Shown here one piece after another: positions 1 to 44,593 of a stretch of 64,000 bases of DNA. How positions within the stretch are numbered: the stretch's first letter is position 1; every line of letters begins with the position of its first letter. Made by a program: the position numbers and the translations under genes. Source of the stretch: Phaeosaccion multiseriatum. Taxonomy: Eukaryota > Protista > Ochrophyta, other classes. The stretch covers positions 806,001 to 870,000 of the forward strand of contig OZ218959.1 of NCBI GenBank assembly GCA_965112735.1. Direction: 5' to 3'. The notes beneath the pieces were generated by a model. The model searched no databases. It saw only the letters and a list, made by a program, of their open reading frames with translations, and was not told the origin of the DNA.

Positions 1-588
1 TTGCTCGCGAGGTGTCTGTTGCGTCTCTTCGGCGTTCCTGTTGCGCGAGACGGCCTCCAGCAGCTTGTCCAGACGTTGGTGCGGGAGGCCAAGCCTCTGG
101 AAGCGTCCACCGTTCCTGCCGAGGTGAACCAGGCGCTCGCCAGGCTGCTCACCAAGCTGGCGGAACTCTCTCTGTGTCTGGCGCAGGTGACGGGGCAGGC
201 CACGGATGAGCAAGCCTTGGTTACGGGCCTGCTGGCGGTGCTGCGGCCAGAGGTCGAGATTCGGCTTCGTCACGGCTCGTTGCCATTAACTGACGGCATG
301 ACCAACTTCTGGCTGCGCTGGGAGTCGGCGACTCCCTCGTGGAGTGATTTCTACGCCGCCTTCCAGAAGGCATTTCCTTCCGCGACTCGGGTGCTCCAGG
401 CTGGTAGCCCACTTACGCTCTCTTCTACTGGTGGGGCTACGCGGGCCCGTGGTGGTGGTGGTGGTGGTCTGCGCACTCCGCGCGGGGGAGTGGCCGTGAA
501 TGCGGTGGAGCAGCATCTGGAAGTGGCCGTGAATTCGGTGGAGCAGCATCTGGACCATCAGCCGTCACAGGAGGTGGGGGTGAATGCA

Positions 589-623
<35 letters not shown>

Positions 624-924
624 GGCGCAGCAGCCGCGGCTCACGCCCACCCAGCAGCGGCCCTTGCTGTTCCACGGCTCGGTGAAGCAGCGTGGCAACG
701 GCAATGCCCCATTTAACTGCATGACTTGTCGCCGCGCCGGCCATGGATGGATAGAATGCAACGCCATCCCCGCTACGCGTGAGGAGCTGCTCGGCATTGT
801 GAGTCGCGTGCAGCGGCGGCAGGCGGTCAGAGCGCAGCACCAGGAGTCCGACATGTCTGAAGCCGTAGCAGCAATGGTGGCGGGCACTCTGGCGGCGCAG
901 GACGGGTTCAAGTTCGAAGGCTGA
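1..924 (+). CDS. gag: Gag (5'-partial) with CCHC zinc knuckle
   Basis: CMTCRRAGHGWIEC (C-x2-C-x4-H-x4-C) at about 718-759; lies upstream of protease and pol. Confidence 0.8.
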
Positions 925-976: not shown

Positions 977-3412
977 GTGAGGATAGCGTCGGCGTGGGGG
1001 AACAGGGGGAGGGCGGGCAAGAGCAGTGTAGAAGATAATGAATGTACTTCGCACCTATCTTGTTTGTCAGACCCACCTTTGCCCCATGCCGACGCTCAGC
1101 GTAGGAGCGGTCAGGCTAGTCGTGTAGAGCAGGAGTCACCTGCCATCAGAGTTTATCGGAGTGACATGTGGTGTGGCGACAGACTCAAACGTGCTCGGCT
1201 ACAACGGCAACAGCAACAGCAGCAGCAGCTGCAGCAGCAGCAGCTGCAGCAGCAGCAGCAGCAGCAGCAGCGCCGTGTCGTAGAGGCAGTCGTGGAGGGT
1301 GCGCACAGAGAGGCTGTGCCTGCGCCGTCCGCGGTCGAGCAGCTGCCAGCGTCGGAGCGGCAGCTGCCGCAGCCGCAGCGCCAGCAGCCGGAGCGGCAGC
1401 TAGCGCAGCAGCCGGGTCCTGTGGTACGCTCTGTGGTCGAGCAGTCGCGGGGCACTGACGGCCCGGATGCAGTCGTTGCTGGTGAGCACACGGCGATGAC
1501 GGCGGTACAGCAGCAGGCGCAGCGTGCAGTAGAGGTAGTCGTGGAGGGCGCGCACCAGGAGGCTGCGCCAGCGGCTTCCGCAGTCGAGCAGCTGCCGCCG
1601 CCGGAGCAGCAGCAGCAGCAGCAGCAGCAGCCGTGTCCAGTGGTACGCTCCGTGTGCTTAGTCGAAGCACCGCAGCCCGGCTCTGCCGTCGAGCCGTCGA
1701 GCGGACCTGACGTCGCGCTGCCGCTGCCTCTGCGCCAGGAGGATGCAGTCGTTGCGGGTGAGTGTCCGGAGCAGCAGGTGCCACCGTCGGCAGTGGGGGA
1801 GGTTGAGTGCGAGGCGGCAACCGTTGCGCAACACGAGTCTGTCTGGATGGATGCAAGGGGTTTGGAGCGGGTGCGTGCGTGTGCCTTCCCGGAACAGCGC
1901 GCACTGCGTGCGGCGAAGGAGCGGCAACAGCGGCTGGGACAGCAGCAGCAGCTGCTGCAGCAGCAGCCGCAGGTGGCGGGGGGGCAGCAGGAGCAATTGG
2001 AGCAGCAGCAGGGTCATGCTGTCGAGGCTGCCGTCCAGGTTGCAAAAGCCAGCCCACCGTCAAGCGATGAGCTTCAGCCTCAGCAGCTGTGCTCCCTGGT
2101 GACGCCTCGCCAGACCAAGGCCATGGGCCTCGTGCGGGCCTTACCGCTCGGGGCAGCATCTCTTCCGCCATTCACTCCCACGGGGGAACATGAACAGTGG
2201 GCGTGGCAGGTTCAGCTTCAGCAGCAGGAGGAGGTTCAGCTTCAGCAGCAGGAGCAGAGCCTTCGGACCCTGCCGCTGACGTCTCCAGCGGTGCCTCCGG
2301 CGGAGGGGCGGAGCAGGACTGAGCAGAGGGTGGCAGCAAAGTGGTTGAGACGGCGTGCCCAGCAGGCGAAGGCAGCGCTGCGCAAGGGTGACGAGCAGGC
2401 GGCACAGGAGCAGCAGGATGCAGCGAGGCGCGCAGTAGCTCTTCGACGGCGGGTACGGAGGAAGCAGCGGAGGCAGCGTGCTCGTGCGACAGCAGCAGCA
2501 CAGCAGCATCAGCAGGAGGCTGCTTTCACGGCGGTGTTGACGGAGGAGGCGGGGCTGCACACGCTTGCCCTTGATCCGTTTGTGCGTGCTTGTCATGCAG
2601 TAGCCTTGGAGCCTGGCGCGGGAGTCGCTCTGCTCAAGGAGCCCCCCAGTCCGGGAGCTTGTGCCTGTGCGTCGGCTGTTGACAGTGAGTGTGATATGTG
2701 TGAGGGGTGTGTGCAACGCGCTGCCTTGGCTCTCTACCGTGTGCGGATGGAGGACGCTCCGGGGGGGGTGGCCGCCTTGCAGACAGCAGTGCGGAGAGCT
2801 GAGATTGCCGAAGCGGTGGCTGCCACGGGTCGTACGGCAGTCCCAGCAGGGCGGGGCCACACGATCGAGGTTACGGTGCGCTCGCCAGTGAAGGTCAGTG
2901 ACGCTCGGCATTGCTTGGCTGCTACCGCTCCACGGGATGCCAGTGCCGCCGACGCCGTGGAGAAGAGCGCCTTTACAGCCTTGATGGACAGTGGGTGCAC
3001 AGGAGCGGGCTGCATCTCGACAGCCTGCTTCAATCAACTGGTGGCGGATGGCACGGTGGAGCGGTCAGAGCTCGCCACGCAGAAGGGGGTGCAGGTGTCT
3101 TACGCTGACAATCGTGCCAAGACTATGTCCAGAGGGCTTGTTTGGCTTCAGGTGGGACTCACGCCGACGTGCCAGCCGGTGCTACCCTTTCATGTGGTGG
3201 ACCACTTGGCGCGGCCCATCTTCTTGGGGCAGGATTTCTTCACCCAAGTAGGGGCAGTCGTCGATCATCGTGCGAAGCAGCTCTACGTACTTCCGACTCC
3301 TTCGGAGGAGGCCACGTCGGATGCTCGTCCGTCCGATGCCTTGGCTGTGCAAGTGCTGGCAGTGGTGGACGGCAACGCTGCTGTTGGGGGGTACGTGCTG
3401 TGGAGGCTTTGA
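977..3412 (+). CDS. Q/A-rich spacer plus retropepsin aspartic protease (frame open from 869, +1 relative to gag)
   Basis: ALMDSGCTG active site (D at 2987) and downstream PIFLGQDFF flap motif. Confidence 0.8.
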   Translation: MRIASAWGNRGRAGKSSVEDNECTSHLSCLSDPPLPHADAQRRSGQASRVEQESPAIRVYRSDMWCGDRLKRARLQRQQQQQQQLQQQQLQQQQQQQQRRVVEAVVEGAHREAVPAPSAVEQLPASERQLPQPQRQQPERQLAQQPGPVVRSVVEQSRGTDGPDAVVAGEHTAMTAVQQQAQRAVEVVVEGAHQEAAPAASAVEQLPPPEQQQQQQQQPCPVVRSVCLVEAPQPGSAVEPSSGPDVALPLPLRQEDAVVAGECPEQQVPPSAVGEVECEAATVAQHESVWMDARGLERVRACAFPEQRALRAAKERQQRLGQQQQLLQQQPQVAGGQQEQLEQQQGHAVEAAVQVAKASPPSSDELQPQQLCSLVTPRQTKAMGLVRALPLGAASLPPFTPTGEHEQWAWQVQLQQQEEVQLQQQEQSLRTLPLTSPAVPPAEGRSRTEQRVAAKWLRRRAQQAKAALRKGDEQAAQEQQDAARRAVALRRRVRRKQRRQRARATAAAQQHQQEAAFTAVLTEEAGLHTLALDPFVRACHAVALEPGAGVALLKEPPSPGACACASAVDSECDMCEGCVQRAALALYRVRMEDAPGGVAALQTAVRRAEIAEAVAATGRTAVPAGRGHTIEVTVRSPVKVSDARHCLAATAPRDASAADAVEKSAFTALMDSGCTGAGCISTACFNQLVADGTVERSELATQKGVQVSYADNRAKTMSRGLVWLQVGLTPTCQPVLPFHVVDHLARPIFLGQDFFTQVGAVVDHRAKQLYVLPTPSEEATSDARPSDALAVQVLAVVDGNAAVGGYVLWRL

Positions 3413-4668
3413 GCTTGGGACCTGGACAGACGGGGTCCCTTCTCCTCGAGCTTACGGGTATCGTTGAGGGTGTCCAGGCGGTGGTGGAGCTGGGCGCTCA
3501 CGGACACTTGGCGGCAGAGGCGGACGTTCTATGGTGGCTGGAGCACGAGCAGGTTCTAGTGGCGCACAAAGATGGTGTGTATGCTGGGGGGCAGAGTTAC
3601 CGAATCACAGTGCAGAATCACCACAATCAGGTCATTGTGGTCGTTCCTGGGCAGGTCATCGGCACCGCTTCTTGCTTGCTCGACTCGGAGGCGAGCGCTG
3701 AGGTGGCCGCGCTCATGCTCGCTGAGCCGGCTTCTTCAGATACCATGCCGGAGACTGCAGCGGCCCCCTCCTCCTGGCTTGGTGCTCTTGGCGGGATGGT
3801 GAGGCGTGTGGTGAAGCGCAGGCTGCCATGGTCCAAGGCGCGGGAGGCGGTTGAGTCTGTGGTGGAGGAGGAGGCGTCGCAGCAGCCGGCTGAAGCTGAA
3901 GCAGGAGCTGAGCCGGTCTGGTGCCCACCGCAGGGGCCTGTAGTTCGCTGCTCGGTGGTACCAGAGGAGGCTGAGCTGGGGGCTACGGCGCTTCCGCTGC
4001 AAGCTGTGCAGGTGCAGGCCCTGACGCACCCACGGACTGAGGTGGGGGTGCCATCGACTCTGGTGCCTCAGCCGGCAGTGAAGGCCCGGTTTCAGCATTT
4101 GCAGCGCAGCGGCAAGAAGGGGAGTCAGTGTCGTCAGAGTCGAGTGGGTGCTGGGCGGTTGCAGCGGCAACGTCGGAGAGTGGCATCAATGCTTGTGGAG
4201 TCTCCTGTGCTGTGGGACCAGGTTCATCGGCAAGCAGTGTTGGAGCGCCATGAGCAAGTGCGACGACAAGTTTTGCCGCTGCGACGGGAGCTGTGCGCTG
4301 ACGGCTCCTGCGCCTGGCATCACCGAGGGCTTCGTCTCGCTTGGGGGAGCGACTTGGGGCAACGACAGGTGCCGCGGGAGCGTCGCGTGCCCTTGGCGCC
4401 CTCCTGGGGGGGACAGTGCGAGTGCCGGCCAGACGAGCTGACACACCACGAGTGGACTCGAAGGAGGAGACAGCAGCCTGGTTGGCAACGCAGCAGGCCA
4501 AGCGGTTACAAGCGGCACAGCAGCAGGCACGGCAGCAACGCCAGTGGGCATTGCAGCGACGGCACAAGGCCCAGCGGGAAGAGCTCTTTAAGCGAGCGGA
4601 TTCGTCGGCAGCTCAGCAGGTTCAGCGGTCCAATGCGGTACAGCAGCAGGTGGCTCCGGCGGCGGTAG
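3142..4668 (+). CDS. Post-protease segment of the element-1 polyprotein (frameshifted piece; probably real only from about 3390 to 4410)
   Basis: RITVQNHHNQVIVVVPGQVIG resembles the beta-rich region that follows the protease in many Gypsy Pols. Frame changes coincide with G6 (3386-3391) and G7 (4406-4412) runs. Confidence 0.55.
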   Translation: MASGGTHADVPAGATLSCGGPLGAAHLLGAGFLHPSRGSRRSSCEAALRTSDSFGGGHVGCSSVRCLGCASAGSGGRQRCCWGVRAVEALSLGPGQTGSLLLELTGIVEGVQAVVELGAHGHLAAEADVLWWLEHEQVLVAHKDGVYAGGQSYRITVQNHHNQVIVVVPGQVIGTASCLLDSEASAEVAALMLAEPASSDTMPETAAAPSSWLGALGGMVRRVVKRRLPWSKAREAVESVVEEEASQQPAEAEAGAEPVWCPPQGPVVRCSVVPEEAELGATALPLQAVQVQALTHPRTEVGVPSTLVPQPAVKARFQHLQRSGKKGSQCRQSRVGAGRLQRQRRRVASMLVESPVLWDQVHRQAVLERHEQVRRQVLPLRRELCADGSCAWHHRGLRLAWGSDLGQRQVPRERRVPLAPSWGGQCECRPDELTHHEWTRRRRQQPGWQRSRPSGYKRHSSRHGSNASGHCSDGTRPSGKSSLSERIRRQLSRFSGPMRYSSRWLRRR

Positions 4669-7600
4669 CGCGACGCCGTCAGACACAGTTGCAGGAGCCC
4701 CGACCGCCTCGTACAGGCCAGCTGCAGGTCCACCACGTGGCGGGGGCTGATGATTCCACCAGCAGGCCTGCGCCAGGGGCGGCATCGTCAGTGGCGTCGG
4801 AGGAACCGCCACTACGGTCCGAGGCAGGTTCATCGTCGGCGGCGGTGGGCACATCATTGACTGACCTACGCGGTGATGGGTGGGTACTGGATGCGGATGG
4901 TGCCTTGCGACTCGGTAGCCAGAGTGACACGTCCGGTGGGACTCTGATGGCAGGAGTGCAGTTGATCAAGGAGTGGTACCCTCACCTGTCAGAGCGAGTG
5001 TATGGACGTCTGCGCGAGTGCTTGGTTGCGGCAGAGGAAGGGGCTGTGACCGCGCTACTGCTCCTGCGCCCCCATGTACACCAAGCCGCTGGCACGGGTC
5101 TGAGCGGCGTTGGGGACGTTGCTGTGGCCGCATGGGCCCAACAGCTCTTGTCGTTGTGGTCTAGTCGCCCATTACAGCAGCAGGAGAAGGTGGAGCAGGA
5201 TATGACCAATGCGCTGCTGCTCCTCATCCAATTGCGAACGGTGCTGCAGGAGAGTCGCTGTCTTGGTGGGGGAGTGGAGTCGTGGGATGCAGGAGAGCTT
5301 GTGGTGGAGCAGCGGCGCCGTGCCAAGCTCACTACGGAGAGGGCTCAGTTCTGGCTCAGGGAGCTACCGTCGCCCCTGCACGCTATCACGATTGGCGACG
5401 GTGCCTGGACGGAGGTGCAACGCTGGGGACTGGTGGCGATCCTTCGCGCTCGGTCGCAAGCATTCTGTCAGAGGCCTGGTGACTACGGTCGGACGGATAC
5501 TCTCTTCTTTGAGTGGGGACTGAAGGATGCGAATCAGCAGCCCATTCGGAGCTCCGCTCGACGGTATCCTCCACATTTGCGGCGGGGGATTGAGATTGAG
5601 ATTGACAAGCTTCTCGCGGCTGCCATCATTCGCCCCAGCACTTCCAGCTGGGCTACTCCGCTGATGGCGGTCTTGAAGACGGACGCAGCTGGCAAAACCA
5701 AGTGTCATGAGGATGGGACGCCTGTGGTACGTATGACGTGTGACTTGTCTCAGCTGAATGATGCGTGTCGCACGGAGGCCCCTGCGATGCCGGTGATTGA
5801 TGATCTGCTGGCAGAGATGCATGGCTCCAAGGTGTTCTCGGTGATGGACATCATGTCGGGCTACTTCAATGTGCCGATGGCATCAGCAGCGGAAGAGGAC
5901 ATATCCACCTTTGTGTGCCACAGTGGAACTTACGCTTGGCGAGTGATGCCGCAGGGCGCGAAGAATGCGCCTGCAGTCTTTGTGCGGCTTATGAACAAGG
6001 TGCTCAAGGGGCTTCAGGAGCATGTGGCATGCTTTGTGGACGATATTGCTGTGTTTTCGGCTACGGTTGAGCAGCATCTGGAGCATTTGGATGCTGTGCT
6101 TGCGCGGTTGGTGGAGCACAAGCTCAAGTTGGAGCCGAGTAAGGCTGTATTGGGTGCACCGGAGGTGCGGTTCTGCGGGCATTTGCTGGATCAGAATGGG
6201 GTGCGCACAGACCCGGCCAAGCATGCGGCGGTGCAAGAGCTGGTCAAGCCGTTGAGGTTGCTTGCGAAGGATGGCGGCGTCAATCGAGTTAAGCAGGTGC
6301 GGCGTTTCATTGGCATGCTCAGCTACTTTCGCCGTTTCATTCCGGAGTTTGCGCGCAAAGTGCGGCCCCTCAATGGGCTGCTGCGTAAGGGCGTCGACGT
6401 GAGCACCGCCTGGAATGCCTCGCACGATGCAGCTTGGGATGGACTCGTTGCCGACTTGTTGTCTTCCCCTGCACTGGCTTTTCCGGAGTACGGGCCAGCG
6501 ACGACTTTCACCCTGAGTACCGATGCCTCGACGGAAGGGTTAGCAGGAGTGCTCTCTCAGAAAGATGCGACCGGGGAGGAGCGTGTGGTGACGTTCATCA
6601 GTCGGGCTACCACGGAGACGGAGGCGCGACTGAGCAGCACGGAGCTGGAGCTGCTGGCAGTGGTGTGGTGTGTGCGCAAACTGGCCATGTACATCTGCCA
6701 CTACCCCACCACAGTGGTGACGGACCATCAGCCCTTGTTGTGGTTGGCTGGGCACAAGGATACCAATTCCAAGCTGTTCAGATGGTACGAGCGGCTCTCT
6801 ACGCACCACTTGCAGTTTGTGCATCGTCCCGGGAAGCAAATGGTGGTGCCTGACTGCCTCTCTCGCAACGCGCTTCCGGTGCAGGAGTGGGAGACGCATG
6901 CGGGGGTAGACTTGGCCATGGTTGCGTGCGAGTGGCCGTCGCCCTTGCACACCTGGTGTGCTTCGATGGGGGTGCAGTTGAACCTGGTGGAGATGGTAGG
7001 GGACGAGTGCAGCCTTCATTGGGAGGAGCCCACGGAGGGCGCACTGCTTCGCTTTCTCGCAGTGGCGCAACAGCTGCAGGGCGAAGCCGACACACGCCTT
7101 CCTATTCCTGTGCCTGCCGTGACGGCCCAGCAACAGCAGCAACGGTGCCACCACCAGCAGCAGAGCGGAGCGGAGGCCCTACAAGCCTGGCAGACTGCAG
7201 AGGTGGACTTGGCGGCGACGCAGTCACGCAGGGGTACTGCTCGGCGTGCTTGGACACAGCGTCTTCAGCAATGTGGATGGCAGCCTACGCGAGCACCCCA
7301 GCTGGGTGTGAAGAAGGCTGTGATAGAGGCCTGGCAGCTGGGTCAGATGCCGCCATTTGTGAGTCACATTTCCGCAGCGAGGTGCACGTACGTGTCTACG
7401 CCGAGGCACGTGCAGGCTCTATCGACTCAGTTGCGCTCAGCCAAAGTGGTCGCTATGGATTCGGAGTGGGCGCGTCACCGACGGCGCGCGTCGCTGCTGC
7501 AATTGGCCGTGCAGGTTGGGCCGCTGCCGGATGTGGCGCGTGACTATGGGCTCTTGATTGATCTAGACGCGCTTCAGAAGGCGGGGGGTATGATGGTACT

Positions 7601-10600
7601 GGCGCAAGTGTTGCGGGACCTGTGGACCGAACCCTCGATTGTGAAGCTGGCTCACCACTGGAGTCACGACCAACGTGCCCTGGGCCGATGGCCGGAGCTC
7701 GCGGAGCATGTCCAGCACATCGTCAACTTGGTGGACACCAGTGACCTCTTTAAGCGCGTGTGCCCCGAACATACTCAGTTCATCGGACTCCAGGACCTTG
7801 TCAGCATGTTTTTGGAGCAACACCTTAGCAAGGAGGAGCGGGCCACCGATTGGACGAAGCGGCCGCTGTCCGCCGCTCAACGGGAGTACGCGTTTGCTGA
7901 CGCTGCGGCGCTCCTCCGCCTCTGGCCTCGCATGGCGGAGTGTGTGCCGTTCGTCCATGGTGGCCCGGGGGTGGAGCTTAGCGCGATGAGCCCTGCTCAC
8001 ACCCCTGCGGAGCAGGAGGAGATGCAAGTCGGCAGGTTCATGCAGGCCGCGGTTGGTTATTGGGGCGATCGCGACCACGTGTCACCGCTCTACATCTTTG
8101 GTGTCCACTCCAAGACGTTGGAGGTATTCGACCTGGCCAAACTGCAATTCAAACTGCAGTGCTCGTGGGAGACAATGATGCAGATGGTGGAGCGGTTCAC
8201 GCGGACATATAAGCGCCAGCGGAAGGTGGTGGGCGCGTTGGCCAGTCATCTAGATACCATGATCGAGTTGCCATGGAAGCAAGTCCGTCAGGTGTCGCGT
8301 GACTACTTCTCGATGTGCACACCAGCGGAGGCTCAGCAAACGGGTGCCGCGGCCGCTCATGCGTGGGCTGCATGGGAGGCCGAGCTTGAGGAGGATGCGT
8401 CTCGTCTGCCCTCGGAGGAGCTTGTTACGGAGGAGGGCCGCATCACCCACCCTGGGGAGCCGCCTGCTGCGGAGTCGCCGTCGGAGCCTGGTACGGCAGA
8501 TCTACTGGTCACGGAAGAAGCGGGGGATGCAGGTGATGAAGCTGCGGATGCAGTGGATAATGAAGCTGAGGAGGCAGTGGATTCAGTTTCCAAGGAGCCG
8601 GTGGAGCAGGAGTCCACCTTGCAGCGCGAGCTTGATGGGCATCGACGAGAGGCAGAGCGACAGTTTGGGTGGTCTCTACCAGGCACGGTGCCTGCTGCCG
8701 CGGCGCACAGACGAGCGGCTGGAGCTTTGGGTGGCAGTCTGCATGTCGAGGCCGCGTGGTGGGTGCGTGCGCAGCGGGCTGATGCGGAGCTGGAAGCACT
8801 CCGTCGCCGTGTTCAGGCTGGGCCCACCGGCGGCGTGGTGGATGCAGGTGGGGGTGAGTTCTTTGTGGATGAGGACGGGCTCTTGATGCGTAAGTGGGCT
8901 CCTGGGGGCTTTCGGTGGCGGGTGCGGCACACTCGGCTACAAGTATGTGTGCCCAAGGAGATGCGGCCAGCCTTGCTGCATGCCGCCCACACCGATGCCA
9001 TCGCAGGTGGGCACCAAGGCCCGGGACGTATGCTAGACGCGCTGCAAGAGCGCGTATGGTGGGAGAAGATGAATGCACATGCGCTGTATTGGGCCCGCTC
9101 CTGTCTGGCGTGCCAGACACGCAAGACTCCTCGCCGGCAGCCAAAGCCTGTGCCGCTGTCGTCCATTTCCAAGGTGGATGGACCTTGGGCGGTCATGGGC
9201 GCTGATGTGGCTGGCCCCTTTCCTATGGGCATGGGCGGTGAGGAGTACCTCTTGGTGTTTCAGGATTGGTTCACGAAGTGGACAGTGGTGGTGCCTTTGA
9301 GGGCACAGGACTATACGGCGGAAGGTATTGCTCGGGCCTTCGTGCGGCATGTCGTCACCACCCTGGGTGTGCCCCGAGTGCTGGTGAGTGATCAAGGCTC
9401 GCAGTTCACCAGTGCGCTCATGGGCGATGTGATGCGAGTTCTATCGGCGTCGCAAGTGTTCACGACGCCGATGCACCAACAGGCCAATGGGCAGGTGGAG
9501 CGCTTCATGGCCACGATCAAGGACATGTTGGCGACGACCGTGGAGTCACAGATGCAGCAGTGGCCAGATTACGTCGCCGGGCTCACCTATGCGTACAACT
9601 GCCGCTCGCAGGAGAGCACGGGGATGGCGCCATTCTACGCCTTGTTCGGTCGGCACCCCCCGGTGCCTCTACAGGCGATGCTTCCGGCGCTAGTGGAGGA
9701 CGGGTCGTTTTCGTCTGCCTCGGCATGGGTCCACGAACTGCGGGCACGTCTGGCTGCGGCTGCGGCGGTGGTCAATGGGAGGCGCTGCGACTACCACGGG
9801 AGATTGCAGCTGAAGAACGCCTCACGCCGTTGGCCGACGCCCCTGCGACCCGGAACCAAGGTGATGTTGTATCGTCCTGGTGCCGCCGCCCAGCAAGAAG
9901 GGGAAGAACTCGAAGGGCCCCCGTCAGCGCAACTCAAGGCTCTGCAGCACTCGTGGGATGGTCCTTATACAGTCTTGCCTTGGCCAGCTCTGGGGGCCTA
10001 CTGTGCTCAGCATGGGCGGGTGAGTGAAGAGCACTACCAGGTCATGCAGCGCAGCGCAGTGTATCTGTCTATGAAACGGGTGCGCGGCAATGGTGTGGAG
10101 CAGCTGCAACGGGCGTACCACAGAGACTTGACGAAGCCGTTCATCGATGGGGTGAGCGAGCGACCCTTCGGTCTCCCGGAAGGATTCGCCAGGTATCATA
10201 TCCGTTGGTGCTCTCCTCAGTGGGCTACCAGCGCAATGCAGGAGCAGCGTAGCTTAGAGCTGGACGAGGTGAGTGAAGGGAAAGTGCCCACGCTGGCGAG
10301 GATTGTGAAGTTCCGCTGGCGCAAAGCCACGGGGCTGCCACTGCGGCGAGAGTATAACGTGCGGTGGGCGGTGTCGGACGGCGGCACTTTCCAGACCTGG
10401 GAATGGGCTGAGTGGTTACTGGAGCGGGGACACGCCAAGGCCATAGAGGCGTTCGAGAACGCCCTCCCGCACACTGCCCTTGATCCAGGAGTGAATGTCA
10501 AAAGAGGGCATAGGTCTAAACGGGAAAGCACGATCCGTCTGCGGCAACATGAGAAGTGGGGCAGCGGGCTGGCGCACGAGACGCAATTCTATCGCTCGCA

Positions 10601-10613
10601 TCTCGGCTTCTGA
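4341..10613 (+). CDS. pol: Pol: RT, RNase H, DEDDy 3'-5' exonuclease, integrase, chromodomain-like
   Basis: RT: FSVMDIMSGYF and FVDD (6033-6044). RNase H: TDAS...ELELLAV...TDHQPL...DCLSR. Exonuclease: MDSEW, HWSHD, EYAFAD. Integrase: H-H-C-C plus ADVAGP/SDQGSQF/NGQVERF. Chromo-like: EYNVRW...TWE. Confidence 0.95.
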   Translation: MGERLGATTGAAGASRALGALLGGTVRVPARRADTPRVDSKEETAAWLATQQAKRLQAAQQQARQQRQWALQRRHKAQREELFKRADSSAAQQVQRSNAVQQQVAPAAVARRRQTQLQEPRPPRTGQLQVHHVAGADDSTSRPAPGAASSVASEEPPLRSEAGSSSAAVGTSLTDLRGDGWVLDADGALRLGSQSDTSGGTLMAGVQLIKEWYPHLSERVYGRLRECLVAAEEGAVTALLLLRPHVHQAAGTGLSGVGDVAVAAWAQQLLSLWSSRPLQQQEKVEQDMTNALLLLIQLRTVLQESRCLGGGVESWDAGELVVEQRRRAKLTTERAQFWLRELPSPLHAITIGDGAWTEVQRWGLVAILRARSQAFCQRPGDYGRTDTLFFEWGLKDANQQPIRSSARRYPPHLRRGIEIEIDKLLAAAIIRPSTSSWATPLMAVLKTDAAGKTKCHEDGTPVVRMTCDLSQLNDACRTEAPAMPVIDDLLAEMHGSKVFSVMDIMSGYFNVPMASAAEEDISTFVCHSGTYAWRVMPQGAKNAPAVFVRLMNKVLKGLQEHVACFVDDIAVFSATVEQHLEHLDAVLARLVEHKLKLEPSKAVLGAPEVRFCGHLLDQNGVRTDPAKHAAVQELVKPLRLLAKDGGVNRVKQVRRFIGMLSYFRRFIPEFARKVRPLNGLLRKGVDVSTAWNASHDAAWDGLVADLLSSPALAFPEYGPATTFTLSTDASTEGLAGVLSQKDATGEERVVTFISRATTETEARLSSTELELLAVVWCVRKLAMYICHYPTTVVTDHQPLLWLAGHKDTNSKLFRWYERLSTHHLQFVHRPGKQMVVPDCLSRNALPVQEWETHAGVDLAMVACEWPSPLHTWCASMGVQLNLVEMVGDECSLHWEEPTEGALLRFLAVAQQLQGEADTRLPIPVPAVTAQQQQQRCHHQQQSGAEALQAWQTAEVDLAATQSRRGTARRAWTQRLQQCGWQPTRAPQLGVKKAVIEAWQLGQMPPFVSHISAARCTYVSTPRHVQALSTQLRSAKVVAMDSEWARHRRRASLLQLAVQVGPLPDVARDYGLLIDLDALQKAGGMMVLAQVLRDLWTEPSIVKLAHHWSHDQRALGRWPELAEHVQHIVNLVDTSDLFKRVCPEHTQFIGLQDLVSMFLEQHLSKEERATDWTKRPLSAAQREYAFADAAALLRLWPRMAECVPFVHGGPGVELSAMSPAHTPAEQEEMQVGRFMQAAVGYWGDRDHVSPLYIFGVHSKTLEVFDLAKLQFKLQCSWETMMQMVERFTRTYKRQRKVVGALASHLDTMIELPWKQVRQVSRDYFSMCTPAEAQQTGAAAAHAWAAWEAELEEDASRLPSEELVTEEGRITHPGEPPAAESPSEPGTADLLVTEEAGDAGDEAADAVDNEAEEAVDSVSKEPVEQESTLQRELDGHRREAERQFGWSLPGTVPAAAAHRRAAGALGGSLHVEAAWWVRAQRADAELEALRRRVQAGPTGGVVDAGGGEFFVDEDGLLMRKWAPGGFRWRVRHTRLQVCVPKEMRPALLHAAHTDAIAGGHQGPGRMLDALQERVWWEKMNAHALYWARSCLACQTRKTPRRQPKPVPLSSISKVDGPWAVMGADVAGPFPMGMGGEEYLLVFQDWFTKWTVVVPLRAQDYTAEGIARAFVRHVVTTLGVPRVLVSDQGSQFTSALMGDVMRVLSASQVFTTPMHQQANGQVERFMATIKDMLATTVESQMQQWPDYVAGLTYAYNCRSQESTGMAPFYALFGRHPPVPLQAMLPALVEDGSFSSASAWVHELRARLAAAAAVVNGRRCDYHGRLQLKNASRRWPTPLRPGTKVMLYRPGAAAQQEGEELEGPPSAQLKALQHSWDGPYTVLPWPALGAYCAQHGRVSEEHYQVMQRSAVYLSMKRVRGNGVEQLQRAYHRDLTKPFIDGVSERPFGLPEGFARYHIRWCSPQWATSAMQEQRSLELDEVSEGKVPTLARIVKFRWRKATGLPLRREYNVRWAVSDGGTFQTWEWAEWLLERGHAKAIEAFENALPHTALDPGVNVKRGHRSKRESTIRLRQHEKWGSGLAHETQFYRSHLGF

Positions 10614-10637
10614 GGGAGCTGGCGGAAGAGGCGGGGG

Positions 10638-10847
10638 TGTAGTGAGGGGGATGTTAGAAGTGGCCTAGTTGGGGTCCCTTGGGGACCCAATCAGTAGTGT
10701 AACGGCCGGAAAACGGGCCAACTAGACGGTAAATCAGTAATAAAAGAAAGGAAGCGCAGCCTGCGTGTGGGCTGGCTTCCGGGTGCTTGCTTCAGCTTCT
10801 GCTCTGCTCTAGCTTGGCTTTGAGGCTAGCTGTCGGTAGTTTCGACA
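10638..10847 (+). repeat. 3' LTR of element 1 (210 bp)
   Basis: Starts TGTAG right after the PPT GGCGGAAGAGGCGGGGG, contains AATAAA at 10739-10744, and ends TTCGACA exactly where the interrupted element-2 gag resumes. The partner LTR is not in the window. Confidence 0.75.
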
Positions 10848-11530
10848 TCCTCCTTCACGAGTCTTTTAAAGGCATCTGGGTTCTTCTTCAGCTGGTCCCA
10901 GCCCTTCATCCTTGCCGCGCTCTGTACGTGCTGTTTGAATTCGTTGGGCCTTAGGCCGGCCTGAATGCTCTCCGACACTAGAACGGCATGCGTTGGTAAG
11001 AACGCGTAGGTGTCGAGGTTAATGAACTCCGACTCCAACCCCCTTTTGTCGAGTAGTTCATACAGGGGAAGAAGCTGTTTCTGTACCCTTTCCTCTACGT
11101 CGATGTGGTTACCTTCCTTGTCCAGCATGGACATGACTAGGCTCTTCCTTATAGCATCTTGCAGCTCCACGGGGTTGCGCTGTGAGGCCTCCGCTGTCCT
11201 TCCCGCAAGCTGTTTAATCGCTGCCAGGAAAGAGGCTTCCACTGCTGCACTCGTTGCTGCATCGTCGGCCGCTAAGGCTGTCCTCTCATCATCGCTGAAC
11301 ATCTCCTTAATGATGTGCATTCTTACCGAGCGCTTTAGGCACGATTGCACAGTAGCCTTCGGGTTGCGCCGGGCCTGCTCTGGTGTCAAATTCCTCGTGA
11401 GAGCCGTATGCTGTTGCTCATACAACGTGAAGCGATCCAGCCACGCCCCCGAGTCCTTAGTTGCCACCTCAGAAAGGTGAGGCGCACGCAGCTCCTCTGC
11501 AGACTGCGCCATTGGTGCCGAATCCGCCAT
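10848..11530 (-). pseudogene. Truncated gag-like ORF of element 2
   Basis: ORF 10826..11581(-) is highly similar to 14469..15494(+) (e.g. GLRPNEFKQHVQSAARMKGWDQLKK). Its last residues derive from the element-1 LTR. Confidence 0.75.
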
Positions 11531-11778
11531 CCTGGCCTCTCCGGTCTTCTTGAATCTTTCTTCAGTTTCTGGTATCACCAATACTGAGTAATAATCGATT
11601 ATTGTAGCGTCGGTGAACTTGCGCTAACTAACTGTGACTCACACTCTTTGTCTGTGGACTCCCCACTCCTTGGTGGGAGAGATAAGACGTCAAAACCTTA
11701 TTGATAGAACGAGAGTAGAATATATTAAACAATTGCCTCGGGTTTCCGATTTGGCATGAAAGAGTGGCCTACTCCACA
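10848..11778 (-). mobile_element. Gypsy-type 'element 2': 5' LTR (11603-11778) plus gag truncated by insertion of element 1
   Basis: Inverted homolog of 14222 to about 15150. The gag matches 14469-15494 up to LVKE and then runs into the element-1 LTR. Confidence 0.8.
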
Positions 11779-14221: not shown

Positions 14222-15396
14222 TGTGGAGTAGGCCACTCTTTCATGCCAAATCGGAAACCCGAGGCTATTGTTTAATATATTCTACTCTCGTTCTATGCAA
14301 AACGTTTTGGTTTCTTGTCTCTCCCACCGAGGAGTGGGGAGTCCACAGACAAAGAGTGTGAGTCACAGTTAGTTAGCGCAAGTTCACCGACGCTACAATA
14401 ATCGATTATTAATCAGTATTGGTGAAACCAGAACTGAAGAAAGACTCAAGAAGACCGGAGAGGCCAGGATGGCGGTTTCGGCACCAATGGCGCAGTCTGC
14501 AGAGAAGCTACATGCGCCACACCTTTCGAAGGTGACAACGAAGGACGCGGAGGCGTGGCTGGATAGCCGCACGTTGTATGAGCAACAGCATACGGCTCTC
14601 ACGAGAAATTTGACGCATGAGCAGGAGCGGCGAAACCCGAAGGCTACGGTGCAATCATGCCTGAAGCCTTCTGTCAAGATGCACATCATTAAGGAGATGT
14701 TCAGCGATGCAGAGAGAACGGCCTATGCGGCCGACGATGCAGCAACGAGTGAAGAAGTGGAAGCCGCTTTCTTGGCAGCGATTAAACAGCTTGCGGGAAG
14801 GACAGCGGAGGCCTCACAGCGCAACCCCGTGGAGCTTGCAGATTCTTTGCGGAAGTGCCTGATCATGCCCATGCAGGACAAAGATGGTAACCACATTGAG
14901 GTGGAGGAAAGGGTACAGAACCAACTTCATGGCCTTTATGAGTTACTTGAAAAAAGGGGTTTGGAAGCGGAGTTTGTTGACCCCGTCACCTTCGCGTTCA
15001 AACCAACGCATGCCGTTCTATTGACGGAAAGCATCCTGGGCGGCCTAAGGCCCAATGAATTCAAACAGCACGTACAGAGCGCGGCAAGGATGAAGGGCTG
15101 GGACCAGCTGAAGAAGGACCCAGATGCCTTTAAAAAACTCGTGAAGGAGGAGGCAAAGCTTTTCAGGTCTGCAGACCAGTTGATGGCTAAGCAGTCCAAA
15201 CAGAAGAAAGACGGCAAGCAAAAGGAAACCAAGAAGGGCGACCAAAAAGGCAATGGCAAGAAGAGCGACGGGAAAGATGGAGGCGGCAAGCAGGGCGGTG
15301 GCAATGGCGATGGCAGTAAGGGAGATGGCAAAGCTGAGGGAAATCGTGACGGAAAGAAAGACAAAGACAAGAAACGCACGCAGGACCCCAACAAGC
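14222..15396 (+). mobile_element. Gypsy-type 'element 3' (same family as element 2): 176-bp 5' LTR (14222-14397) plus gag, truncated by another LTR
   Basis: Homology with element 2 begins exactly at TGTGGAG. The LTR end CGCTACA is inferred by analogy with the other elements. The gag becomes K/G-rich and is interrupted at 15397. Confidence 0.8.
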
Positions 15397-42700: not shown

Positions 42701-44593
42701 CTGGCCTGGCCTGGCCTGGCCTGGCCTGGCCTGGCCTGGCCTGGCCTGGCCTGGCCTGGCCTGGCCTGGCCTGGCCTGGCCTGGCCTGGCCTGGCCTGGC
42801 CTGGCCTGGCCTGGCCTGGCCTGGCCTGGCCTGGCCTGGCCTGGCCTGGCCTGGCCTGGCCTGGCCTGGCCTGGCCTGGCCTGGCCTGGCCTGGCCTGGC
42901 CTGGCCTGGCCTGGCCTGGCCTGGCCTGGCCTGGCCTGGCCTGGCCTGGCCTGGCCTGGCCTGGCCTGGCCTGGCCTGGCCTGGCCTGGCCTGGCCTGGC
43001 CTGGCCTGGCCTGGCCTGGCCTGGCCTGGCCTGGCCTGGCCTGGCCTGGCCTGGCCTGGCCTGGCCTGGCCTGGCCTGGCCTGGCCTGGCCTGGCCTGGC
43101 CTGGCCTGGCCTGGCCTGGCCTGGCCTGGCCTGGCCTGGCCTGGCCTGGCCTGGCCTGGCCTGGCCTGGCCTGGCCTGGCCTGGCCTGGCCTGGCCTGGC
43201 CTGGCCTGGCCTGGCCTGGCCTGGCCTGGCCTGGCCTGGCCTGGCCTGGCCTGGCCTGGCCTGGCCTGGCCTGGCCTGGCCTGGCCTGGCCTGGCCTGGC
43301 CTGGCCTGGCCTGGCCTGGCCTGGCCTGGCCTGGCCTGGCCTGGCCTGGCCTGGCCTGGCCTGGCCTGGCCTGGCCTGGCCTGGCCTGGCCTGGCCTGGC
43401 CTGGCCTGGCCTGGCCTGGCCTGGCCTGGCCTGGCCTGGCCTGGCCTGGCCTGGCCTGGCCTGGCCTGGCCTGGCCTGGCCTGGCCTGGCCTGGCCTGGC
43501 CTGGCCTGGCCTGGCCTGGCCTGGCCTGGCCTGGCCTGGCCTGGCCTGGCCTGGCCTGGCCTGGCCTGGCCTGGCCTGGCCTGGCCTGGCCTGGCCTGGC
43601 CTGGCCTGGCCTGGCCTGGCCTGGCCTGGCCTGGCCTGGCCTGGCCTGGCCTGGCCTGGCCTGGCCTGGCCTGGCCTGGCCTGGCCTGGCCTGGCCTGGC
43701 CTGGCCTGGCCTGGCCTGGCCTGGCCTGGCCTGGCCTGGCCTGGCCTGGCCTGGCCTGGCCTGGCCTGGCCTGGCCTGGCCTGGCCTGGCCTGGCCTGGC
43801 CTGGCCTGGCCTGGCCTGGCCTGGCCTGGCCTGGCCTGGCCTGGCCTGGCCTGGCCTGGCCTGGCCTGGCCTGGCCTGGCCTGGCCTGGCCTGGCCTGGC
43901 CTGGCCTGGCCTGGCCTGGCCTGGCCTGGCCTGGCCTGGCCTGGCCTGGCCTGGCCTGGCCTGGCCTGGCCTGGCCTGGCCTGGCCTGGCCTGGCCTGGC
44001 CTGGCCTGGCCTGGCCTGGCCTGGCCTGGCCTGGCCTGGCCTGGCCTGGCCTGGCCTGGCCTGGCCTGGCCTGGCCTGGCCTGGCCTGGCCTGGCCTGGC
44101 CTGGCCTGGCCTGGCCTGGCCTGGCCTGGCCTGGCCTGGCCTGGCCTGGCCTGGCCTGGCCTGGCCTGGCCTGGCCTGGCCTGGCCTGGCCTGGCCTGGC
44201 CTGGCCTGGCCTGGCCTGGCCTGGCCTGGCCTGGCCTGGCCTGGCCTGGCCTGGCCTGGCCTGGCCTGGCCTGGCCTGGCCTGGCCTGGCCTGGCCTGGC
44301 CTGGCCTGGCCTGGCCTGGCCTGGCCTGGCCTGGCCTGGCCTGGCCTGGCCTGGCCTGGCCTGGCCTGGCCTGGCCTGGCCTGGCCTGGCCTGGCCTGGC
44401 CTGGCCTGGCCTGGCCTGGCCTGGCCTGGCCTGGCCTGGCCTGGCCTGGCCTGGCCTGGCCTGGCCTGGCCTGGCCTGGCCTGGCCTGGCCTGGCCTGGC
44501 CTGGCCTGGCCTGGCCTTGGCCTGGCCTGGCCTGGCCTGGCCTGGCCTGGCCTGGCCTGGCCTGGCCTGGCCTGGCCTGGCCTGGCCTGGCCT
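39744..44593. repeat. (CCTGG)n pentamer array, about 970 copies; probably mis-basecalled telomeric (CCCTAA)n
   Basis: Almost perfect CTGGC repeat with rare CCCTGG units, at a contig start directly distal to (CCCTAA)n. Confidence 0.9.

Follow-up and report, generated by a model that had tools for sequence, protein, structure and literature searches.

A giant Ty3/Gypsy retrotransposon of Phaeosaccion multiseriatum carries a complete DEDDy 3'-5' exonuclease inside its Pol polyprotein, in frame between RNase H and integrase. The window, the whole stretch of DNA that was analysed, covers 64,000 nucleotides (assembly GCA_965112735.1, contig OZ218959.1, positions 806,001 to 870,000). Positions are given in window coordinates on the + strand. 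The domain is real, complete, in frame, present in many copies and under purifying selection. We are highly confident of the joint picture. The family is a recently active, giant (12.5–13.3 kb) Ty3/Gypsy long terminal repeat (LTR) retrotransposon with the Pol order protease (PR), reverse transcriptase (RT), RNase H (RNH), DEDDy exonuclease, small module and integrase (IN). Its exonuclease, with a complete catalytic set, falls in the RNase D/WRN/Mut-7 (Nibbler) branch of the DnaQ-like superfamily. The domain was acquired and kept up, and very probably serves the element as a functioning accessory enzyme rather than riding along as a passenger.

The Pol open reading frame (ORF) of the window copy runs from 4341 to 10613 (+), encodes 2090 aa and ends with a stop codon at 10611–10613. 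Pfam recognised RVT_1, RT_RNaseH, PF01612, Integrase_H2C2 and rve in this order within it, so that the domain lies where the original prediction, made from the letters of the DNA, had placed it. Translation and motif scan also agree with that prediction on the codons of the three Exo motifs. ExoI is VVAMDSEW, with D at 7458–7460 and E at 7464–7466 (DSEW 7458–7469). Its D-x-E is invariant in two lineages of the family, A and B, and the form in a third lineage, C, is LDTEF. ExoII is HHWSHD (7653–7670), and its D (7668–7670) does not vary among A, B and C and is conserved to at least 90% in an alignment of 46 sequences. ExoIII is YAFAD (7887–7901), with Y at 7887–7889 and D at 7899–7901, and Y-x3-D is invariant over the 46 sequences. 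This Y is the residue that separates DEDDy from DEDDh nucleases.

The match to PF01612 (DNA_pol_A_exo1) reached 75.1 bits in the whole Pol, with 167 of the 173 profile positions covered, and 80.7 bits (E 1.5e-22) for an excised piece of 240 aa, the curated cut-off being 23.6 bits. The AlphaFold model of the domain, built from the 46-sequence alignment, had a mean predicted local distance difference test score (pLDDT) of 89 and a predicted template-modelling score (pTM) of 0.86. Foldseek against the PDB returned the Nibbler exonuclease domain first (E 3e-11, probability 1.00), followed by RNase D, Rrp6, WRN exonuclease and EXD2. An independent VIA fold search was run with a second model of 365 residues, which holds the exonuclease and the module behind it. 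It gave Nibbler a Z score of 23.2 (root-mean-square deviation 2.6, 193 residues), WRN exonuclease 21.4 and RNase D 21.2. The exonuclease domains of Aquifex Pol I (Z 20.1) and the apicoplast polymerase (Z 19.5) scored slightly below the Z of 21–23 of the trimming nucleases. The nearest ESM Atlas cluster was named 'MUT7 exonuclease' (TM 0.75), and a PDB profile search matched NrnC/diDNase, a Mut-7 homologue, RNase D and Rrp6. The predicted membership of the WRN-exo/RNase D/MUT-7/EXD family was thus borne out by both the profile and the model. Among the 50 BFVD matches listed, the viral models were giant-virus and phage nucleases only, and no reverse-transcribing virus was found. Pfam did not find Mut7-C (PF01927) in Pol. 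An HRDC domain on the 3' side of the nuclease was considered and rejected, since Pfam gave no match. A chance occurrence can be dismissed, as about 30 copies share the domain and its model is a confident DEDDy nuclease fold.

The features of the coding region, all on the + strand, are as follows.

1..924 (+): 3' part of ORF1 (Gag-like); the frame opens upstream of the window at about -1313 and ends with TGA at 922–924
718–759 (+): CCHC zinc knuckle in ORF1, a CX2CX4HX4C motif read from the sequence
977..4668 (+): N-terminal part of Pol in overlapping frames (977–3412, 3142–4668, then from 4341)
2981–2995 and 3221–3241 (+): aspartic protease (retropepsin) motifs LMDSG and FLGQDFF, respectively, from a motif scan, upstream of RT
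5742..6182 (+): reverse transcriptase, PF00078/RVT_1 at aa 468–614, E 1.5e-27, with FVDD at 6033–6044
6411..6800 (+): RNase H, PF17917 and PF17919 with E 2e-28 and 1e-22, RT_RNaseH at aa 691–820
6801..7388 (+): linker 1 from RNase H to exonuclease, 196 aa, no domain recognised by Pfam at E<=5
7389..7937 (+): DEDDy 3'-5' exonuclease domain, PF01612 at aa 1017–1199, E 7.7e-21
8049..8381 (+): module of about 110 aa behind the exonuclease, conserved across A, B and contig L042, mixed beta/alpha fold
8385..8948 (+): low-complexity linker, acidic in lineage A and poly-glycine in lineage B
8949–9128 (+): integrase H2C2 zinc domain, PF17921 at aa 1537–1596, E 2.3e-15
9201–9461 (+): integrase catalytic core, PF00665 (rve) at aa 1621–1707, E 2.8e-6
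9510..10613 (+): C-terminal part of Pol, its first part integrase C-terminal, 68% identical between A and B with omega ~0.16

RNase H precedes the exonuclease as predicted; its end, which had been put at about 6870, lies at about 6800 in Pfam, a trivial difference. Pfam gave no match for ORF1, the N-terminus of Pol, either linker or the C-terminus, and a PDB profile search returned none for the protease region. The C-terminal region of Pol had a weak PDB match to the integrase region of Ty3 Gag-Pol (E 0.0016). It also contains a W-rich motif at about 10340–10410 that resembles a chromodomain; this is a resemblance only, without a Pfam match. The post-exonuclease module was modelled with moderate confidence (block-mean pLDDT of about 51–83), as three strands followed by helices and strands. 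It had no match in Pfam or the ESM Atlas, and the VIA list for the two-domain model was taken up by exonuclease matches.

The 240-aa domain was compared with the 67-Mb assembly from which the window comes, and 47 matches were found. About 20 of them form lineage A (89–100% identity) and about 10 form lineage B (57–59%). The domain-bearing copies number about 30 on about 10 contigs, mostly in open frames of 1100–3300 aa, and the more complete ones are on contigs C1, C3, C5, C9, C10, C11, C12, C13, C14 and C16. The two lineages have different flanks and are 59% identical in the exonuclease domain. A full lineage-B element measures 13.3 kb and has 200-bp LTRs that are 100% identical and a Pol of 3199 aa. 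It is nested, with its own 4-bp target-site duplication, in the integrase region of a lineage-A copy. Logan contigs from a second, independent study of the same organism tile positions 6030–9154, and one contig of run X1, which comes from the likely source sample, spans the end of the exonuclease into the integrase (7862–9273). Runs labelled 'plant metagenome' gave short contigs of variants about 90% identical, including the exonuclease at 7399–8198. An assembly chimera, a refutation that the original prediction had allowed for, and a host-gene fusion were rejected on the census of about 30 copies, the two lineages and the in-frame layout, together with the contigs of the independent study.

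Of the copies and fragments of the two lineages taken together, a large proportion was seen within about 0.4 Mb of contig C14 (~2.32–2.75 Mb). This cluster points to a target or sink rich in repeats, which may be centromeric or heterochromatic.

The intact Pols of lineages A and B were aligned, and the identity and omega (dN/dS) were taken for each domain, with the following results.

RT: A–B identity 84%, omega ~0.05
RNase H: A–B identity 81%, omega ~0.05
Integrase core: A–B identity 87%, omega ~0.07
Exonuclease: A–B identity 59%, omega ~0.21
Linkers: A–B identity 39–48% (linker 1 48%), omega 0.32–0.36 (linker 1 ~0.3)

The exonuclease value of 0.21 (pN 0.29, pS 0.68) is an upper bound because the synonymous sites are saturated. 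The most diverged pair within lineage A differed in the exonuclease by 16 synonymous and 12 non-synonymous changes, with an omega of 0.22. Variants within the family, each counted once over 27 copies, comprised 52.5 synonymous and 28.5 non-synonymous changes (omega ~0.17), and this count departs from the neutral N/S ratio of 3.26 with a binomial p of about 1e-14. The set D-E-D-Y-D is kept in 28/30 copies, the exceptions being one truncated and one decayed copy. The low omega and the kept catalytic residues show that the domain is maintained by selection, less tightly than the core enzymes. The collection of copies called for beforehand ended in two diverged lineages under purifying selection (omega 0.17–0.22). 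Because purifying selection has kept the domain, we regard it as a probable working enzyme rather than a passenger, and a dead domain was rejected on the retained catalytic residues.

One decayed lineage-A-like copy (L021, G000:C1:3721875-3725351) is 78% identical in the domain and has one stop codon. Its catalytic residues are changed to Q-K-D-Y-K.

An exhaustive hidden Markov model (HMM) search of 1.84 billion representative proteins gave 1304 matches, of which one was close. This protein (P0003, E 4e-41) is a 186-aa fragment, 45% identical, from a 917-bp Joint Genome Institute (JGI) metagenome contig (L042). Its frame is open to the 5' end of the contig and keeps all three Exo motifs, and past one stop the frame continues with sequence resembling the post-exonuclease module. 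It is taken as a third lineage (C), presumably from another organism because a search of the P. multiseriatum genome shows no such copy. All other matches had E >= 2e-18. Ten long or top-scoring ones scanned with Pfam were cellular, several with Mut7-C and none with RT, and two metagenome scans found only distant cellular homologues at 30–43% identity. A word-indexed protein search with the 240-aa domain returned two weak RNase D-like proteins, and one with the whole Pol scored on the exonuclease region returned none; both are limited by a length window and by poor gene calling in repeats.

In a quick maximum-likelihood (ML) tree, lineages A, B and C formed one clade (SH-aLRT 91). This clade stood beside three small exonuclease plus Mut7-C proteins with weak support (SH-aLRT 82–88) and long branches. 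The host's own DEDDy genes, against which the original prediction had asked for a phylogeny, fell elsewhere, and they are 35–47% identical to the element domain over only 41–48 residues around ExoIII. A recent capture of a host gene was rejected, as the host paralogues are distant. All RT–RNase H relatives in this genome with at least 73% identity are members of A or B; the Gypsy families that come next reach 31–35%. The acquisition therefore predates the A/B split, and this genome holds no sister family without the exonuclease.

The nearest database Pols are of Gypsy type, which supports the Ty3/Gypsy placement, and the nearest 120 are at most 41% identical in RT–RNase H. PF01612 was in 0/120 of these Pols (1150–3650 aa, precomputed Pfam lists), which agrees with the earlier statement that a standard Gypsy Pol has no such domain. 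Other accessory domains were seen in nearest Gypsy Pols (P0190, P0254, P0207, P0250), namely a C5 DNA methylase (PF00145), PHD fingers (PF00628) and a GDPD domain (PF03009), the last in a Haematococcus protein. Judged from their domain content, Pols of this group appear to pick up enzymes freely. In the ESM Atlas, a rotifer cluster was found only at rank 58.

The element of the window is a 12.45-kb Ty3/Gypsy-type LTR retrotransposon with the order Gag / PR-RT-RNH-Exo-IN. Its ends were found by self-comparison of the window plus 7 kb of upstream sequence, and are as follows.

-1604..-1408 (L031 5397–5593, outside the window) (+): 5' LTR, 197 bp, TG...CA
10614..10650 (+): polypurine tract (PPT), abutting the 3' LTR, read from the sequence
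10651..10847 (+): 3' LTR, 197 bp, TG...CA, 100% identical to the 5' LTR
10848..10851 (+): target-site duplication TCCT, with its partner copy at -2215..-2212, left of a hairpin block

The element interrupts an older, unrelated repeat (10848–11778; L031 4658–4788), whose two halves match an inverted copy at 14222–15278, 3.4 kb downstream. Relative to the C1 copy, the window copy has G-runs of other lengths near 1004, 3385 and 4405, which shift the frame, although its two LTRs are identical. Its coding region upstream of 4341 is split over three frames. The length differences may come from true slippage or from homopolymer errors in the assembly. A single open Pol frame is seen in other copies, of 3274 aa on C1 and 3303 aa on C5. 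The C1 copy has a 619-aa ORF1 and Pol in the same frame with one TGA between them (L032 2944–2946), a putative read-through-type arrangement.

The start of the internal region indicates how the element may prime its cDNA. No TGG-type (tRNA) primer site was found after the 5' LTR; tRNA sequences were not compared. In lineage A, LTR positions 125–133, 37 nt after AATAAA, have their exact complement in the 9 bases directly behind the 5' LTR. In lineage B (L036 488–700), the 8 abutting bases are complementary to LTR positions 132–139, 29 nt after TATAA. Five pairs of this pairing between the primer-binding site (PBS) and the LTR are common to A and B, and the rest differ in a compensating way. Shuffling gave a chance of 0.003 for A and 0.01 for B. 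This layout suggests self-priming of the Tf1 type. Neither the primer site nor the PPT is set off from its LTR end by spacer nucleotides, and the finished cDNA should therefore end exactly at TG...CA.

Three perfect hairpins of 89–94 nt, about 258 nt apart, were seen left of the 5' LTR (L031 4789–5396, window -2211..-1605). Each starts with TGTTAGAAGT, which equals the first 10 LTR bases, and finishes with the inverted complement. The TCCT duplication encloses the hairpin block and the full element together, so that the two were inserted, or now behave, as one unit. The region between the ORFs of lineage B (L036 2899–3912) has large inverted repeats that are nearly perfect, and also a perfect palindrome of 306 nt; they are reminiscent of this block beside the lineage-A LTR.

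We suggest tentatively that the exonuclease matures the 3' ends of the element's own replication intermediates. This mechanism taken alone falls clearly short of an even chance, and the whole explanation, mechanism included, comes close to one without reaching it. The exonuclease would be translated and packaged as part of Pol and carried into the particle, where it would act on these 3' ends. It might trim the fold-back self-primer, or it might strip unpaired or non-templated 3' nucleotides from the cDNA ends before integration; the cDNA would have to end exactly at TG...CA before the downstream integrase could use its ends. We favour this role on three grounds: the closest relatives trim single-stranded 3' ends distributively, the replication design of the element appears to need exact ends, and the domain would travel with Pol into the particle. 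The domain is probably catalytically active and would act on the element's own nucleic acids.

Several points weigh against 3'-end maturation or loosen its base. The omega of the exonuclease (~0.2) is several times that of RT and integrase (~0.05), and the domain is less constrained. Family membership leaves the substrate ambiguous, since RNA is the substrate of Nibbler, RNase D and Rrp6 and DNA that of WRN and EXD2. The exonuclease lies 196 aa from RNase H and about 340 aa from the integrase, and such spacing does not seem to indicate physical coupling to either. Self-priming stands on two lineages, with the LTR transcript start predicted from TATA-like motifs. The sampling comprises one genome, one 917-bp metagenome contig and short plant-metagenome contigs about 90% identical, and none of the Logan runs listed with the sequence is on record as RNA.

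We do not think that the domain is a polymerase-coupled proofreader. Such an enzyme would remove mismatched 3' nucleotides left by the element's own RT. The outcome would be a reverse-transcribing replicase of high fidelity, comparable to what nidovirus ExoN achieves in RNA replication, and it would allow the coding region to reach its unusual length of about 9.8 kb. Exonuclease and polymerase do share one polypeptide, the elements are large (12.5–13.3 kb, Pol 3200–3300 aa), the family-A polymerase exonuclease domains named above fit the model well, and the copies differ mainly by synonymous changes. However, the best matches in sequence and fold are stand-alone trimming nucleases rather than polymerase editing domains, the tree neighbours are small exonuclease plus Mut7-C proteins, and the 196-aa linker that parts the exonuclease from RT–RNase H is unconserved (48% between A and B). 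Far larger LTR elements such as plant Ogre are not known to have an exonuclease and manage without one. Proofreading thus seems unlikely to us, and quite improbable in its strongest form, in which RT and the DEDDy domain would be a joint proofreading replicase, the first in any retroelement, linked to the doubled coding length. A role in trans, by a Mut-7/Nibbler-like attack on host small RNAs or in 3'-end maturation of transcripts, is likewise doubtful. Nibbler is the nearest solved structure and MUT7 the nearest Atlas cluster, both of them trimmers of small-RNA 3' ends, and the weakly supported (82–88) tree position beside exonuclease plus Mut7-C proteins points the same way. The authors of the rotifer study also raise RNA 3'-end processing and silencing-related roles (PMC5408684). 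Against this, a site in the middle of Pol would suit a cytoplasmic suppressor poorly, as Pol is normally scarce and enclosed in the particle, and Pfam found neither Mut7-C nor another RNA-targeting partner domain in Pol.

Two further explanations were weighed. The domain could be a neutral host fragment, or its only service could be to bind nucleic acids or to act as a spacer, in the manner of EXD1 or Maelstrom, and the selection on it is indeed weaker than on the core enzymes. Yet the five catalytic residues stand in 28/30 copies, the motifs are kept in three lineages down to 45% identity, and the omega of ~0.17 departs from neutrality with p 1e-14. Known non-catalytic DEDDy relatives have lost their catalytic residues; such loss is touched on in the discussion of PMC5408684. 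This explanation is very improbable. An artefact, either an assembly chimera or a retrotransposon inserted in a host exonuclease gene, has a negligible chance. The short-read contigs are fragmented, and none of those listed spans RNase H to integrase. Nevertheless, about 30 copies, spread over about 10 contigs and two differently flanked lineages, repeat the in-frame layout, the contigs of the independent study tile 6030–9154, that of X1 (7862–9273) joins the end of the exonuclease to the integrase, and the host DEDDy genes are only distant relatives.

The closest known systems are retroelements of bdelloid rotifers. The LTR elements Juno and Vesta and the Athena/Terminon retroelements carry a DEDDy nuclease as a separate ORF3 (Rodriguez et al. 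2017, PMC5408684), which confirms what the original prediction had stated of rotifers. In these rotifer elements the ORF3 sits downstream of pol, one of its catalytic residues is changed (DEED), it shows no clear departure from neutrality within the genome, and 3'-end processing was proposed as its role (PMC5408684). The rotifer DEDDy is cited as an accessory domain in PMC6338049. The element described here is likewise an LTR retrotransposon with an RNase D-like DEDDy accessory nuclease, but here the nuclease is an in-frame Pol domain upstream of the integrase. It has the full D-E-D-Y-D in place of DEED, purifying selection on it can be measured, and its host is a GC-rich microbial eukaryote. 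LTR retrotransposons that carry a DEDDy nuclease as an accessory are thus known, and what appears to be new is a nuclease in frame between RNase H and integrase, catalytically complete and selected, from another eukaryotic lineage. The rotifer Juno/Vesta and Athena/Terminon ORF3s were the only retroelement DEDDy nucleases in the literature searched. A DEDDy domain embedded in Pol was not found in full-text searches or in a review of the RNase H-like superfamily; subscription journals and Repbase were thinly covered, and priority is not certain.

Among cellular proteins, Mut-7/EXD3/Nibbler are the best fold match, the best Atlas cluster and the weakly supported tree sister, and have identical catalytic motifs. 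They differ in that the element is without Mut7-C and is only about 20–33% identical to them, and they are cellular small-RNA trimmers rather than domains of a retroelement polyprotein. RNase D, Rrp6, WRN and EXD2 share the Pfam family PF01612, the fold (Z 19–21) and the DEDDy active site with the element. As a difference from this group, HRDC was not detected after the nuclease of the element, which is followed by the module without a family match. Nidovirus nsp14 ExoN and the arenavirus NP exonuclease are also 3'-5' exonucleases recruited by a replicator without an editing polymerase. They are DEDDh enzymes of RNA viruses at other genome positions, and the likeness would be functional only.

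Self-priming Ty3/Gypsy elements of the Tf1/sushi type were reportedly described by Levin in 1995–96 and by Butler in 2001. The present element resembles them in having no tRNA primer site found, in LTR-abutting bases that pair near the predicted transcript start, which suggests self-priming, and in a chromovirus-like C-terminal region of Pol. Unlike them, it is twice the usual size and carries an exonuclease, and no database Pol exceeds 41% identity to its RT–RNase H.

Reverse transcriptases are the standard example of a polymerase that does not edit, and LTR retrotransposons have few accessory enzymes. The family makes it testable whether a retroelement can edit or polish its own cDNA or primer ends, and what the DEDDy genes of rotifer retroelements evolved to do. 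The domain is small and confidently folded and has obvious catalytic knock-out controls, and is therefore easy to assay. Should the exonuclease and RT work jointly, the domain would also hold practical interest where reverse transcription of higher fidelity is wanted. If it proofreads, it would be the reverse-transcription counterpart of nidovirus ExoN.

Two further features of the window lie outside the element. A stretch of about 12 kb at ~27500–39500 is almost pure purine (GAG/GGA-rich) on the + strand. After it, at ~40000–44500, comes a pentanucleotide satellite, (CCTGG)n, of about 4.5 kb.

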